Source: Guillardia theta CCMP2712 (taxonomy: Eukaryota > Protista > Cryptophyta). Taken from it: 64,000 bases of DNA. The DNA is taken from NCBI RefSeq assembly GCF_000315625.1, contig NW_005434551.1:32324-96323 (forward strand), given 5' to 3'. Shown in pieces: positions 1,711-7,729 of this stretch. The notes under the pieces were generated by a model that was not told the origin of the DNA, ran no database searches, and was given only the letters and a program-made list of their open reading frames with translations. The translations under genes were made by a program, and so were the position numbers. Numbering within the stretch: the first letter of the stretch is position 1; each line of letters begins with the position of its first letter.

Positions 1711-4373
1711 TCAGATGTCTTGCAAGCAGCTCAGCGTCTGCTCTACCTCACTATCCATAATCATCTCCTCCACCTCCTGGGACAGCGTCTTGTTCTGGCT
1801 GAGATCCTCGCCCAGGTCTCTTTGACCTGCTTCCACTGGGTTCAGCCACCTCGACGAGGAGCAGGGAGCGCTGCTGCCCTTGCTCTGGAGCTCGAGGATC
1901 GGCTTCAAGACAGCAGACTTCATGGTCTTGATCGACCGGTAGGAGAGCCGAGACACCACGTCATCTCCAGCGATGCATGTAACGATCTGAGTCAAGGGAT
2001 GAGAAGCGATAGCTCTCCTAGTTCCCTCCGTCCATCCGTTCCTCCGTCCATCCGTTCCTCCCTTCCTCCTTCCCTCCCTCCCTCCCCTCCCCTCCCTCCC
2101 TCCCTCCCTCCCTCCCTCCCTCCCTCCCTCCCTCCCTCCTCCCTCACTTGGTGTCGGACAGTCTTGGCCAGCTCCTGCGAGCAACGTCAGCGTTCCATGA
2201 GCACTAGCGGCAAGGAGACCATGTCCATGACAGGAGGACAAGCAAAGCAGAAGGCCCGGATGTCCGCGCATGACAGACGGCCTGTCAAGGATCAGCAGAA
2301 GGTCATGCCAGACGCTGTCTCACGATCTCTTTCGCAAAACTTAAAGATTGCAACCATGATGGCAGCGACTCCTGCTCCTGCCAACACGAGTAACCCTCCA
2401 AATCACTCGCTGCGGTAACGAAATGAGACCCAGACTGTGGCCGGTGAAGACGATTCTGCTGCCTTCACCCCTGCGAGGAAAGTCATCCAGACCAGTCAAC
2501 CTCGGTAGATTGAGGGTCAGTCACTTGATGAGAGAGCTGAGAATCGTTTGACGAATCTGAGAACAAATCTCCTCCGCGGCCCGAAAAATTCCCATGTGAA
2601 CATGTCCCCGACAACGGTTGGATCGATCTTGGAAGGGGGAGGAGCAGGCGACTAGATCCGTCAGGATATCCCCTGCCTCGAAAGAGCCTGCACCACACAA
2701 GATTCATCCTCTTCACGCAGCTGCCGCTCCTTCAACCTCGAACCGCAACGACGATCGAGTCCGAGGGTGGGTGTCGGAAGACGATGTAGGCAGGGGCGAA
2801 GGTCTCGGCGCTGCCACGATGCTGCAATTCTGAGAGTGAGGGAGGAGGGCAGCGTAAGAAACGATTCTCACCTGGAGGATGAGGGAAGGATGTACGTTTG
2901 AGTATGAACAGAAGCTCGTCAGGTCGTCAAATCGAAATTTCGTGTGCCGATGAAACTCGTGCGGCTGGATTAGAGACAGCATCTTCCAGCCATAGACTGA
3001 GGAAATACAATCAGGGAGGGAGGAATTTCGTATCTAGCATCAACAGTCAAAACGTGTCACACCCACCTGCTATGGCAAAACTCAACCACTGCTCGAGATC
3101 TTTGAAGAATTCAGGACTTTCAGTCAACTCTGACGGATTTCCTCCAAGGATCGTGTTGTCTTGGCTTTGGTTGCTGCAGTTCCCCTCGCACGTGCTGTTG
3201 CTGCACACATAAATGCTCTTGTCATCACTTGGCACTTCACTCATCGACTCGTTAGATGCTGCGTCCGGGAAGATGTCAAGATCGATGTCAAGAGTGAAAT
3301 TCTCGTCGAAGATCCTCCATACGCTGGTCGGGTCAGGGAACAGCACAGCTCCAGCATTCAGGACAGTGTTGCGCATCACTTGCTGGGGTTCAAGAACCAT
3401 CAGGTGCTGGAGCAGGAGGGGAGAAGGACGAGGGAGGACGAGGGAGAGAAGGAAAAAAGCAAGAAATCTCACATTGAGCTTGCTCACAAGCTGCCTCTCC
3501 ATCTCAGCCGCCACCTTCACTCCTCCTGCAAGCACGTGGCTCCATCTGCATGATCCCATCACCACTGACAGCAAACCCATAGGTAGCAAACAACTCGAAT
3601 CTCGTGTTGGCAAACATCTGACCGTAGAGCTCTGCTATCTTTCTGACCGCCTCCTCTTCCCGTTCAAGTTTCTGCGTCAAACTTTCACTCCAGCTCGATC
3701 TCATAAGCTGCTCCTCACCTGCTGCCTCTCTCGCTGCTGCGCAGAGAGCATCTGCCATTGTCCGCAAAAACAGCAGCAGAACGCGCGCAGAAACCAGGCT
3801 CGCCGTTCAATCCTCGCATCCTGATGGAGCCTGAGGTCAAGGGAAGCGCGAGGAGGAGGAGGAGGAGGAGGAGGAGGAAGGGAGGTGAGCTGCAGGAGGA
3901 GCAGGAGCAGGAGCAGGAGCAGGAGCAGGAGCAGGAGCAGGAGCAGGAGCAGGAGCAGGAGCAGGAGCAGGAGCAGGAGCAGGAGCAGGAGCAGGAGCAG
4001 GAGCAGGAGCAGGAGCAGGAGCAGGAGCAGGAGCAGGAGCAGGAGCAGGAGCAGGAGCAGGAGCAGGAGCAGGAGCAGGAGCAGGAGCAGGAGCAGGAGC
4101 AGGAGCAGGAGCAGGAGCAGGAGCAGGAGCAGGAGCAGGAGGATTAACCTGTGGCTCTGAGTCTTCTTGATCTTCTCCGATCCGATCGCTCCCTCCCCTC
4201 AACGTGATGGTAGTCCGTGAGAGAAGAGGGAGAGAGAGCAGCGGATCCAAGCGATGAAGCGACATGCGATGTGCTGGTCTTGCTGTGCTCATCATACGGC
4301 CTTGACAAGATTGACCAGCCGAGATCAAACCAAGACAGCTCAAAACAATCAACACAGTTGTTGTCAGGCTCAT
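1711..4373 (-). CDS. Multi-exon hypothetical protein with signal peptide plus LRGG leader (3' end uncertain)
   Basis: ATG at 4373 gives MSLTTTVLIVLSCLGLISAGQSCQG...RTTITLRGGSDRIG. A GT intron holds the (CCTGCT)n array. Further in-frame exon-like segments include KLEREEEAVRKIAELY, PDPTSVWRIFDENF and QRDLGEDLSQNKTLSQEVEE. Confidence 0.45.
3891..4142. repeat. (GCAGGA)n hexamer microsatellite, ~40 units, intronic on the minus strand
   Basis: Perfect tandem GCAGGA array, flanked by a minus-strand GT donor (~4148) and AG acceptors (~3820-3832). Confidence 0.97.
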
Positions 4374-5089: not shown

Positions 5090-7729
5090 ATGCGAGTGCA
5101 TCGAAGGCTGCTCCTCTCCTCATGTCTCTTCGTCGTTGCCTTTGGAGGCGACACGTCTCGGATAATCGTACCTGACTTGAGGCATGGGAGTCGAGACGCT
5201 CTCGATGTCCGGGCACGTGAAGGGCAATGTTTGAGGCTGAGAGGAGGAAAGCTCAAGTATAAGAACCTCAGAGAGGTCAAACAGCAGAGACTCGCGGATG
5301 AGCGACTGGCGAAAAGAGCGGACGCCCGGAGGAAGCAGAAGTCGAAGGGAAGGGTGCAGCAGAAGGAAAAGACTCCGCGCCGCAAGCCGCAAGCTGGGGA
5401 ACAGGAACCATATGATTCTGATGACGTCGTATGGCAAGCAGGAGCCAAGGACGAGGACCTTTACGGAGATGATTCTGTACCGTCCGACGAGGTTGATCCG
5501 GACTTGTTGTTCGTGTAGAGTGTGATTGGGTGAAATCCAGGCCGAGAGGGAGATATTCTACGAGGCACAGGAGAAAGAAGCTCGTCGAATAGTCGAAAAG
5601 ATCAAAGAACCGTCCAAGGCGATCGATTTCGAAGAAGCTCTTCAAGCCCCTGAGCTCTCAGATGAATTTCCTCCTGACTCTGAGAGTCGCGGGGAGCCTC
5701 TCGAGGTGAAGGAGAGCAGAGGTTCAGGTGCTTGCGGATGCCGGTGACGTGCGGAGGCAGGAGGAAGGCAGGATGGCTCCGCAGACCTACCTTGAGATGC
5801 TGTTCGGCGACGATGTAGAGGCTGTGAGCCGACCGGAGGGGTGAGAAGTTACTTCGTTTCCCGTCTGTTCTTGACGTTGATGTGCAAGGCTGTCGAGGCT
5901 GCTCGACGAGATGCAATCAGCTTGCAACACGATAAGAGAGTTTGTTGAGCCTGTGGTGATGTGCTTGCAGTTGCTGTCAAGGTTAGCGACTTGGACGCGA
6001 GTGTTACTTGACGTGAGACACGTAGGGATATCAAGTCCATGTCAGCGCCGGAGAGCATTCTCTTCATGAAATACTCTGCATTGACCAAGTTTGTCGAGAA
6101 CATCCAAGTGAGGACGAATATGTTTGTTCCGCTCCTGATCAGTTATGCAAGGGTTATGTCATCATGAAGATGGAAGGTTCCAAGGACTCTGGGGAATCGC
6201 GTAAGTTCCTGGAGAATCTGAACTTGTTGTGGTCAGAGTTGAAGGTATAAAGGGAGCCTGAACTCCTTCGCTTCGCTTCGCTTTCCCTTCCCTTCCCTTC
6301 CCTTCCCTTCCCTTCCCTTCCCTTCCCTTCCCTTCCCTTCCCTTCCCTTCCCTTCCCTTCCCTTCCCTTCCCTGCCCTTCCCTTCCCTTCCCTTCCCTTG
6401 GTCACGTTTCCTTTCGTTCCTAATCCTTCCTTTCCTTTCACCTCTCGTTTCCTTTCGTTACCTCAACTCCCTTCTCTTCCCTTGTCTTGTCTGAATGTCC
6501 ACTCCAATAGGTGATCGCAACTTTTGAATCCCAATTCTCAACAGAAATACAAGAAATGCTCGCAAATGTGAGACTTTTTTTTCTTGTCTCCCGTCGTTCC
6601 TGCCCATATTGTTGTTTGTCTTTGCACTGACATGCTTGTTTGTAGATTGGAAGCAATCGAGCGAAACGAGTGAAAATCAAAAAGAAGCCAAGGTAAGAGA
6701 GGGTAGAAGGGAAACAAATGCTCACATGTCGCCTCAAGCACTCCAGCCGTCAAGTCAACGTCGCAAGACAGAAGGATGGATGAGATAGATGTGAGATGAG
6801 CACTTAGAAGACTTGAACACTCTCGTGTGACTGCCGTTGTCTGTTCAGATCAAGTTGCAGAAGGAAGAAAGGTTCGAGGAAGCCCTGGAGAGTAAAGATC
6901 TAGACCCGACCGTTGCGTTGGACAAGGTGCGATCACTATACCACGGCTGCTCCCTCACCTTGCTCCAGGGCTCGCAGTTCTGGCGGCGAAAGCTCAAGGA
7001 GGCAAAGCAGCTGCACATGATCGTGAGAGAGGACAAGCGAGAACTGAACACGGTGAGGAGAGGGAGAGGAGGCGACATGGGATGACTCTGTTGCAGGATG
7101 AGCAATACAAGGCTGAACGACTGGTTCGCACTCTCCTTTCTCCACATGCTGTAGGGCAAATCTTCTTACTGCTTGCATGCAGGAGTACTTCCAACAGATG
7201 TCGGAAATCGCAAAAGCAGCAGAGATGAAGAGGAGTGGGGAGGATCAGCATCAACGGATTGAAGGGACGGTGCTCCTAGAAGGAGGACGACGACCCGCGT
7301 CATATGGCATGCTGACCAACACAGTGGGAGTGAAGAGAAGATATCGAAATCGCCGGGATAGCAATCCTAGGCTACGGTGCTCTTTCTTTCTCGCTAGCAG
7401 CTTGTTCCCTGCTCTACTGCGTCTTCCTCCCCTCTCGCTTTCGAGCCATCTTCTTCACCCTTGTCTCCTTGCTTTCCTTGTCCTCTCTACCTCTTGTTGC
7501 TCGCTCACTGTCGTCTAGCCTCCGCCATAAGTACCACAACCTCATCATCCGCGCTCGAGGAAAGACAAGGAAAGTCAGGACCGAGAAGGAGCATGGTACA
7601 CCAGCGCTCGCATCTACTTTGGTAATTGACGTCCCTCCAGGATACGTAGGAGAAGAGACGGGAATCAATCCCAAGGCCAAGCACAGTGTCAACTTGAAAT
7701 GGGATGCCAAGGCGATTCGCAAGATATGA
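5090..7729 (+). CDS. SAS10/UTP3: Sas10/Utp3 family SSU-processome protein with N-terminal signal peptide plus LRLRGG (multi-exon)
   Basis: The spliced C-terminus RRPASYGMLTNTVGVKRRYRNRRDSNPRLR|LRHKYHNLIIRARGKTRKVRTEKEHG|YVGEETGINPKAKHSVNL fits the Sas10 C-terminal domain pattern (R.I.Y.I..N.GL...R.K...NPRVK.R.KY......G....R.....YGGE.TGI......SV.L). The N-terminus is MRVHRRLLLSSCLFVVAFGG...CLRLRGGK, followed by basic and acidic tracts. Confidence 0.72.
6266..6398. repeat. (CCTTC)n pentamer microsatellite, intronic
   Basis: Tandem CCTTC array inside the intron that starts GTATAA at ~6245. Confidence 0.95.

Follow-up and report, generated by a model that had tools for sequence, protein, structure and literature searches.

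The window analysed here, a 64,000-nucleotide stretch of nuclear DNA of Guillardia theta CCMP2712, carries a divergent gene pair that encodes a Sas10/Utp3 protein on the plus strand and a class-3 lipase on the minus strand. The Sas10/Utp3 gene (GUITHDRAFT_118200, 5090..7729, plus strand) was identified through an identical NCBI protein with an annotated product of 520 aa. Its assignment to the Sas10 family is based on a Pfam search, in which residues 434–510 of the protein (P0001) matched PF09368 Sas10_C with 44.4 bits, above the gathering cutoff of 25 (E 2.4e-11). Transcript contigs begin at 5048 or 5082 and run across five GT..AG introns, and the exon joints given by RNA contigs lie at 5491/5541, 5705/5761, 5840/5889, 5981/6026, 6107/6152, and 6244/6511. 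The 5' UTR (5048..5089, from RNA contigs) contains a 2-codon uORF at 5077. No transcript contig reaches as far upstream as the ATG at 5042, so the protein starts at ATG 5090, as the original prediction had assumed.

The real first exon of the lipase gene is absent from the GenBank model. The coding part of this exon occupies 4149..4394 on the minus strand, where RNA contigs break off at 4148 and carry on with 3791–3820, linking it in frame to the downstream lipase exons. Intron 1 (3821..4148, GT..AG, from RNA contigs) contains a (CTCCTG)n microsatellite at 3897–4141; the PAPAPA run that had been read as protein following the leader is this microsatellite, and that reading is rejected. Exon 2 (3719..3820, from RNA contigs) comprises 34 codons in phase 0 and is followed by a 47-nt intron 2 (3672..3718, GTGAGG..CAG), which was recognized by k-mer presence: the sampled overlapping 31-mers were found 4/4 in five DNA-type runs (1.00), while none was found in ten RNA-type runs (0.00). 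As demonstrated by the translations, once intron 2 is excised, exon 1 reads on in the lipase frame, and the frame of the annotated ATG at 3758 is lost. The remaining exons (1242..3671, minus strand) correspond to the annotated 481-aa product, which is placed in the Lipase_3 family by a precomputed PF01764 match and by the GxSxG nucleophile elbow, the active-site motif GHSLG near 2430 (FTGHSLG, read directly near 2430–2450, minus strand). Single lipase exons gave no match in our own Pfam scan, being too short.

Both leaders are transcribed, and the minus gene is covered by RNA contigs over 4148–4700 in three runs from three studies. The lipase 5' UTR as assembled (4395..4700, minus strand, from RNA contigs) contains nine upstream ATGs, all opening short uORFs. 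RNA contig depth defines an untranscribed gap of ~350 bp between the divergent transcripts (4701..5047), which forms their shared promoter region, with coverage essentially nil from 4710 to 4993 in the depth table. The bidirectional promoter proposed earlier at ~700 bp in fact measures only ~350 bp between the transcript ends (4700 and 5048); the ATG-to-ATG distance is 717 bp.

Two leaders that end in LRGG

Residues 1–20 of Sas10 (5090..5149, plus strand) resemble a signal peptide by heuristic judgement, consisting of a basic n-region (MRVHRR), a 14-residue hydrophobic core (LLLSSCLFVVAF, Kyte-Doolittle mean 2.7), and terminal small residues G-G. A spacer of 27 residues without lysine (5150..5230) then precedes LRLRGG, which occupies residues 48–53 (5231..5248) and is identical to ubiquitin residues 71–76. 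The spacer composition is weakly positive (R 7, D+E 5, S+T 3), and the segment running from the end of the hydrophobic core to the GG includes 7 Arg and no Lys. Exon 1 of the lipase encodes, in order, a signal-peptide-like N-terminus with hydrophobic core TVLIVLSCLGLI (Kyte-Doolittle mean 2.8), a 41-residue lysine-free spacer of typical transit-peptide-like composition (R 6, D+E 1, S+T 10), LRGG, and an acidic stretch. This leader starts at ATG 4373, with a second in-frame ATG at 4394, and its LRGG (4202–4191 on the minus strand, residues 58–61 from ATG 4373) lies in the context ITLRGG/SD. Re-reading the sequence gave the same peptides and motif coordinates as the original prediction, and bore out the arrangement it gave for both genes, in which a signal-peptide-like N-terminus, a spacer, and then (LR)LRGG precede the conserved part.

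The signal peptides were assigned heuristically, from hydrophobic cores of 12–17 residues that start at residues 7–13 and are followed by small residues (A-G in one leader, G-G in the other). Guessed by the -3/-1 rule, the likely signal-peptidase sites of the two G. theta proteins put G, Q, or D at +1. The GG lies 33–44 residues past the core in the two leaders, with a charged, presumably mature part just beyond the motif. Comparison of the two leaders revealed no relationship in sequence other than the motif, which therefore arose independently in each. Neither leader contains RxLxE/Q/D or RxLR. Upstream of the ubiquitin-like tail we found neither a beta-grasp ubiquitin fold nor a Pfam match, and the tail is all that we see to resemble ubiquitin, so the leaders are tail mimics only and not ubiquitin-like proteins.

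Conservation at the leader boundary of Sas10

The comparison of G. theta with Hanusia phi Sas10 demonstrates that the motif sits exactly where conservation between the species starts. Specifically, the two proteins are 50% identical across the signal peptide and 19% across the spacer, where the alignment contains three indels and 21 of 47 columns are gaps, as against 100% across CLRLRGG and 82% over the 40 residues that follow. One possible signal-peptidase site in H. phi leaves Tyr at +1. A metagenomic Sas10 orthologue (locus L002), 29% identical, likewise has a hydrophobic N-terminus, a spacer of ~70 residues, and LRLRGG-KIKYK, of which the preceding L-R-L is the independent evidence, as RGG belonged to the search pattern. 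Spacer length thus varies among the three proteins (33, 53, and ~70 residues) around a constant LRLRGG and following block. The spacers contain 1 Lys in 205 residues, vs 27 Lys in the 120 residues behind the motif of the three Sas10 proteins. The Sas10 motif runs on into a highly conserved basic block, so that it could be part of the mature protein, and its conservation is inseparable from that of the following 40 residues. For the lipase leader, no orthologue was found.

A candidate maturation site for putative periplastid proteins

The periplastid compartment is the remnant red-algal cytoplasm and holds the nucleomorph. A nucleolar SSU-processome factor such as Sas10/Utp3 behind a signal peptide makes sense only in a second compartment that contains a nucleus. 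We propose, with a probability of roughly 0.5, that both proteins are imported into the periplastid compartment of G. theta through a bipartite leader that ends in an LRGG maturation site; the destination compartment, the cleavage, and the protease class are what we infer for both proteins. In this model, the signal peptide would direct the protein into the ER lumen around the plastid, and the fast-evolving, arginine-rich, lysine-free transit-peptide-like spacer would carry it across the next membrane by means of the ERAD-derived SELMA translocon. The leader would terminate in the fixed (L-R-)L-R-G-G, taken as the maturation site, and cleavage behind the GG would fall to a periplastid cysteine protease, one of the ubiquitin/NEDD8-tail-specific kind. 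Mature Sas10 would then be released with Lys-54 first, exposing a basic, NLS-like N-terminus for nucleomorph entry, and the mature lipase with Ser first. The motif probably marks the end of a leader that directs proteins into the remnant endosymbiont cytoplasm, and LRGG is a real, probably functional, and apparently undescribed element of cryptophyte periplastid leaders; the literature searchable here yielded no description of it.

A ubiquitin-system enzyme of the endosymbiont cytoplasm may read these leader ends as mimics of the ubiquitin C-terminus, either by cutting after the GG or by accepting the motif as a substitute for ubiquitylation of a lysine-free leader, and we hold this only tentatively. 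LRLRGG is the tail of ubiquitin and ISG15, NEDD8 likewise terminates in LRGG, and short RLRGG peptides serve as standard substrates for deubiquitinases. In the precursors of such tails, as at the LXGG sites of viral polyproteins, UCH/USP/NEDP1-type or papain-like (PLpro) proteases cut after the GG. The LRLRGG of Sas10 and the LRGG of the lipase are identical to these tails and stand directly before the part to be released, and the P1' residues (Lys and Ser) are tolerated by proteases of the ubiquitin-tail type. Unlike in ubiquitin precursors, and as in viral LXGG sites, no beta-grasp fold stands ahead of the motif, which speaks against a deubiquitinase, most of which require that fold; moreover, cleavage here would set free a targeting leader from the N-terminus instead of a modifier.

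The leaders also resemble the PEXEL of Plasmodium and the RxLR of oomycetes, in which a short fixed motif a few tens of residues past the signal peptide marks an ER-entering subset as bound for somewhere beyond. In PEXEL, plasmepsin V cuts inside the motif and the destination is the host cell, and the leaders here differ from both systems in sequence, protease, and destination, neither of those motifs being related to ubiquitin. In the periplastid bipartite targeting of cryptophytes and diatoms, a signal peptide precedes a transit-peptide-like region without an aromatic +1 residue (Gould et al. 2006, as summarised in PMC4494062 and PMC12136025), and PMC4494062 gives the non-aromatic +1 as the cryptophyte rule for periplastid retention. 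Our leaders resemble this pattern in having a signal-peptide-like N-terminus and cargo of nucleo-cytosolic type, may share with it a net-positive extension, only weakly so in Sas10, whose spacer is poorly conserved, and a non-aromatic +1, and depart from it as described by being nearly lysine-free and ending in an invariant LRGG. To our knowledge, neither a fixed C-terminal motif of the periplastid transit-peptide-like region nor the peptidase that removes it in that compartment has been described. A related case from a red complex plastid is the periplastid protein PUBL (plastid ubiquitin-like protein) of Toxoplasma gondii, where an RGG termed a 'potential deubiquitinase cleavage motif' stands at the end of the leader before the mature domain; it is not needed for function and no processing was seen (PMC5487736). 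The domain that follows the RGG of PUBL is ubiquitin-like in its own right, whereas the motif here recurs on proteins unrelated to one another, and these cargoes have no relation to ubiquitin.

Alternative explanations and implications

The LRGG could be functional in a periplastid leader and yet not be a deubiquitinase site, serving instead as a recognition or retention element read by SELMA or by a periplastid component of the ubiquitin system, or being cut by an unrelated peptidase with a similar preference. We regard this as rather unlikely, since a fixed motif that exactly ends a leader of variable length usually points to a cleavage site, since processing agrees with where it stands, at the cargo's native N-terminus, and since we know of no ubiquitin receptor that reads an internal LRGG without the fold. 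What speaks for a role of this kind, besides the missing ubiquitin fold and the unprocessed RGG of PUBL, is that cryptophytes reportedly lack ptDUP, a deubiquitinase clade of the diatom periplastid compartment (PMC12412216), and that the leaders are almost free of lysine while diatom SELMA transport reportedly needs N-terminal lysines (cited in PMC5487736); such a leader might, for instance, carry a ubiquitin-tail mimic in place of being ubiquitylated. The missing fold, the reported lack of ptDUP, and the unprocessed RGG of PUBL also weigh against the maturation site proposed above.

Coincidence within the window is improbable in our view. Here, CLRLRGGKLKYK of Sas10 would be a conserved mature N-terminus, e.g., a nucleolar or nuclear localisation element, and the lipase LRGG would have arisen by chance in a purine-rich (GGAGG-type) genome. 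As a bare tetrapeptide LRGG is indeed not enriched in the six-frame translation (7 matches vs 2–8 for its permutations, ~5.5e-5 per position), two random 60-residue leaders share some tetrapeptide an estimated ~6% of the time, and the inseparable conservation of the Sas10 motif and the orthologue-less lipase leader speak for chance as well. However, two of the seven matches sit 50–70 residues into the only two transcript-supported signal-peptide leaders on intracellular-type proteins in the window, both in the same position class, 33–41 residues past the core and shortly before the charged mature part, and the expectation for both leaders to carry this pre-specified tetrapeptide is ~1e-5. It is very improbable that these are ordinary secretory pre-pro sequences, with LRGG as a site of pro-peptide cleavage in the ER, Golgi, or vacuole and no periplastid role. 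The signal peptides are typical and a class-3 lipase bearing one could well be secretory or vacuolar, but the secretory lumen offers no role for a ribosome-biogenesis factor whose N-terminus is basic and NLS-like, LRGG is absent from the two signal-peptide proteins of the window with extracellular-type domains (LRR; a giant IPT/TIG repeat protein), and no secretory pro-protein convertase is known to us to cut after Gly-Gly.

The periplastid maturation site that we propose bears on how, and by which enzyme, the transit-peptide-like part of periplastid proteins is removed in all red complex plastids, and on what, apart from the +1 aromatic rule, distinguishes these proteins from stromal or secretory ones. 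With a fixed LRGG closing the leader, the mature N-terminus could be predicted exactly from sequence, the periplastid and nucleomorph proteome of cryptophytes would gain a simple classifier, and RLRGG-type substrates and probes would offer a biochemical handle on the processing enzyme in a lineage reportedly without ptDUP. If the motif does act as a ubiquitin mimic, it would provide the first case of a deubiquitinase-type protease maturing an organelle presequence, and would tie presequence removal directly to the ERAD-derived SELMA translocon. Additionally, since the lipase leader exon was lost in the public annotation, re-annotating gene models with the motif in mind would probably bring more hidden periplastid proteins to light.

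Gene models and leaders of the Sas10 and lipase genes

The window is nuclear DNA of a eukaryote and contains short GT..AG introns and numerous microsatellites. The product of the plus-strand gene is identical to the NCBI entry 'hypothetical protein GUITHDRAFT_118200 [Guillardia theta CCMP2712]' (scaffold JH993087.1), which confirms the cryptophyte origin assumed in the original prediction. The protein matches PF09368 with an E value of 2.4e-11 and is a nucleolar SSU-processome factor, hereafter termed Sas10. RNA contigs of three runs from three studies span the first exons of both this gene and the divergently transcribed class-3 lipase gene on the minus strand (compared over 4142-6270); about 6% of the raw RNA-seq run X17, when sampled, gave 0 matching reads. 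The leaders are therefore real and transcript-supported for both genes, and the peptides quoted in the original prediction are present exactly as it gave them. Specifically, the Sas10 leader starts at ATG 5090 (+) with MRVHRR, followed by a 14-residue hydrophobic core, G-G and a 27-residue spacer, and its sequence places LRLRGG at 5231-5248 (+). Since the Sas10 contigs begin at 5048 or 5082, ATG 5042 is absent from the mRNA and was rejected as the start; the sole remaining upstream ATG (5077) is a 2-codon uORF. The first exon (5090-5491, +) holds the leader together with the next 81 residues.

The public model of the lipase (481 aa, PF01764) starts at 3758 and lacks the leader and the first two exons. 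Its RNA contigs extend from 4700 to 4148, where they jump to the sequence of 3791-3820; an intron of 328 nt (3821-4148) is therefore spliced out. This intron contains a (CTCCTG)n microsatellite of about 40 copies at 3897-4141, which would read as PAPAPA in the frame of the original prediction but is not protein. A second candidate intron, 3672-3718 (47 nt, GTGAGG..CAG), sets the reading frame and is read through in the public model. All four sampled 31-mers overlapping it were found in five DNA-type runs (share 1.00), versus 0 of 10 RNA-type runs (share 0.00), though RNA contigs traverse the region. With this intron removed, the annotated start, ATG 3758, meets a stop after 15 codons and is rejected, and the open reading frame from ATG 4394/4373 continues in frame via exon 2 into the lipase (KLEREEE...). 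The exon-1 frame thus enters the lipase frame after splicing, and the lipase therefore carries a signal-peptide-like N-terminus and an LRGG leader, with a true length of about 560 residues that is consistent with contigs of 2.1-2.5 kb. This leader starts at ATG 4373 (-), or at the in-frame ATG 4394, and comprises a 17-residue core ending ISAG and a 37-residue spacer, with LRGG read from the sequence at 4202-4191 (-).

Additionally, the assembled lipase 5' UTR (4395-4700, -) contains nine upstream ATGs, each opening a short uORF of 2-34 codons, which indicates either a true transcription start nearer the ATG or uORF-regulated translation. In the part encoded by lipase exon 2 (3719-3820, -), shortly behind the leader, the protein has a hydrophobic Cys cluster (AWFLRAFCCCFCGQW) that may be an S-acylation or membrane-anchor site. 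In the Sas10 gene, whose exon structure was followed in RNA contigs to 6567, five introns of 44-55 nt with GT..AG ends come after exon 1. The contigs link 6244 to 6511 (+), and the following exon begins GTGATCGCAAC and reads VIATFESQ..., whereas the annotated protein passes from ...LWSELK directly to IGSNRAKRVK (region 6244-6700, +). Because this RNA joint disagrees with the annotated protein, the public Sas10 model is probably also wrong in its middle. A (CCCTTC)n microsatellite of about 20 copies lies within a Sas10 intron (6270-6400).

Origin and conservation of the shared motif

An inverted duplication does not account for the motif shared by the two leaders: BLASTP between them aligns only I-T-L-R-G-G-S with L-R-L-R-G-G-K at an E value of 0.77, and the inverted repeats across 4140-5500 consist of short, purine-rich, intergenic arms. 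Composition gives no preference for LRGG either, since six-frame translation of the window yields 7 matches to the bare tetrapeptide versus 2-8 to its permutations, which is no enrichment. Given its frequency of about 5.5e-5 per position (six-frame, window), the probability of meeting the pre-specified LRGG in both transcript-supported leaders over about 60 positions comes close to 1e-5; that two leaders share some tetrapeptide, which we estimate at about 6%, is far less remarkable. The other five matches were rejected as leaders: the one at 63145 is in AT-rich DNA that is non-coding, those at 22498, 22572 and 40283 fall in known genes but out of frame or on the antisense strand, and the one at 32035 is preceded by neither a Met nor a hydrophobic segment. 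A PEXEL or RxLR reading was likewise discarded, neither pattern being present in either leader.

Within the window, both proteins with intracellular-type cargo behind a signal peptide, Sas10 and the lipase, have LRGG (2/2). The motif is absent from both signal-peptide proteins with extracellular-type architecture, namely an LRR protein (27826-29181, -) and a giant repeat/IPT-TIG protein (from about 30090). In the part of the LRR protein encoded at 28990-29181 (-), a clear signal peptide with the end ...GEAEA is followed about 25 residues later, in a Cys-rich cap, by the near-motif L-L-T-R-G-G. This is probably due to chance, though its position is of the same class as that of the motif in the LRGG leaders.

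Searching Sas10 exon 1 with HMMER against 1.84 billion representatives yielded, apart from the protein itself, a single true relative: P0002, an N-terminal fragment of 242 aa from Hanusia phi, a member of the sister genus of Guillardia; P0003, a repeat protein, was a spurious match. Homologue searches with the full-length Sas10 protein and with its residues 1-140 and 193-306 returned nothing beyond the query protein itself, and so brought up neither orthologues of deeper cryptophytes nor the host paralogue. In the pairwise alignment with the Hanusia protein, the signal peptide is 50% identical and the spacer 19%, with three indels and 21 of 47 columns gapped, while C-L-R-L-R-G-G is 100% identical, followed by 82% identity in the 40 residues behind the motif and 32-44% beyond. 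The motif falls exactly on the step from a fast-evolving leader to a conserved protein.

A further Sas10 orthologue (L002; 29% identity) was found among JGI metagenome contigs, on contig Ga0115006_10005467 (2725-4722; GC 66%) of an uncultured eukaryote. Its leader begins with a hydrophobic N-terminus, from which about 70 spacer residues lead up to L-L-R-L-R-G-G-K-I-K-Y-K, where only the preceding L-R-L is independent evidence, RGG being ascertained through the retrieval pattern RGGK[LI]KYK. The spacer of this leader, which follows the same plan, includes a poly-Ala run. Since the three Sas10 spacers measure 33, 53 and about 70 residues, the motif is tied to the start of the mature part and not to the distance from the signal peptide. 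The canonical Sas10/Utp3 N-terminus is a short basic stretch, and GG would lie near the place of the native initiator Met. For one gene, Sas10, these alignments indicate that the motif is evolutionarily conserved at the predicted leader/mature boundary, and it would reach further than expected if the host of the metagenome orthologue is not a cryptophyte.

Predicted destination of the leaders and proposed role of the motif

The plastid of Guillardia theta is of red origin and has four membranes; a periplastid compartment and a nucleomorph come with it. The nucleolar cargo of Sas10 (PF09368) behind a signal peptide fits nucleomorph import and, together with the Lys/Arg-rich stretch immediately behind the motif, argues for the periplastid compartment. 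The likely signal-peptidase sites have G, Q or D at +1, which, under the cryptophyte rule that an aromatic +1 directs proteins to the stroma (PMC4494062), would mean retention in the periplastid compartment. The targeting interpretation of the original prediction is plausible and in part supported. Among about 8.4 million openly accessible papers and preprints, we found none that describes an LRGG/RLRGG motif for periplastid, cryptophyte, Guillardia or nucleomorph proteins, nor any description in connection with cryptophyte presequence processing or N-terminomics; the ASAFind 2.0 and aaRS dual-targeting papers do not mention the motif. Judged from sequence, these would be bipartite periplastid leaders that end in a fixed ubiquitin tail, a feature apparently new to the open literature.

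LRLRGG of Sas10 is identical to ubiquitin 71-76, and LRGG of the lipase to the ubiquitin/NEDD8 tail 73-76. Some enzymes that cut after the ubiquitin tail, such as viral LXGG proteases, need no ubiquitin fold, and tail-cutting enzymes are routinely assayed on short RLRGG peptides as standard substrates. For these reasons, maturation of the leader by cleavage after GG inside the periplastid compartment would be the most economical mechanism. We consider it probable, at roughly three in four, that LRGG has a function in these two leaders. Cleavage after GG by a deubiquitinase-type enzyme is a more tentative proposal, with the odds somewhat against it, because several points weigh on that step. 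No ubiquitin fold was seen ahead of the motif in Pfam scans of individual exons from the two genes, pieces too short to match anything, and ptDUP, the sole candidate periplastid deubiquitinase known from diatoms, is reported to lack cryptophyte members (PMC12412216). The closest parallel is the Toxoplasma plastid ubiquitin-like protein PUBL, in which the RGG that ends the leader is neither processed nor required (PMC5487736). Moreover, the Sas10 motif could formally belong to the conserved mature part as its opening residues.

The main rival to cleavage is a non-cleavage role, in which the motif would mimic the ubiquitin tail on a leader that lacks lysine. The four spacers pooled (4191-4314, 5150-5248, P0002 and L002 2725-3030) contain 1 Lys and 28 Arg in 205 residues; the 120 residues behind the motif in the three Sas10 proteins contain 27 Lys, or 8-10 per 40 residues. 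Such near-Lys-free spacers would be odd if SELMA, the ERAD-derived translocon, requires transit-peptide lysines, as reported for diatoms, where N-terminal transit-peptide lysines are described as essential for SELMA transport (Lau et al., as cited in PMC5487736).

Other features of the window

Arrays of the GGGAGG/CCCTCC type, similar to the long hexanucleotide microsatellites in the introns of both genes, are repeated along the window, as at 2050-2160, 10300-10650 and 62680-62760, and a run of N of about 900 bases marks an assembly gap at 13426-14322. The region 63000-64000 is AT-richer and free of long ORFs, with repeated GGGGTGGG / CCCCACC-type words, and may be a degraded mobile element.
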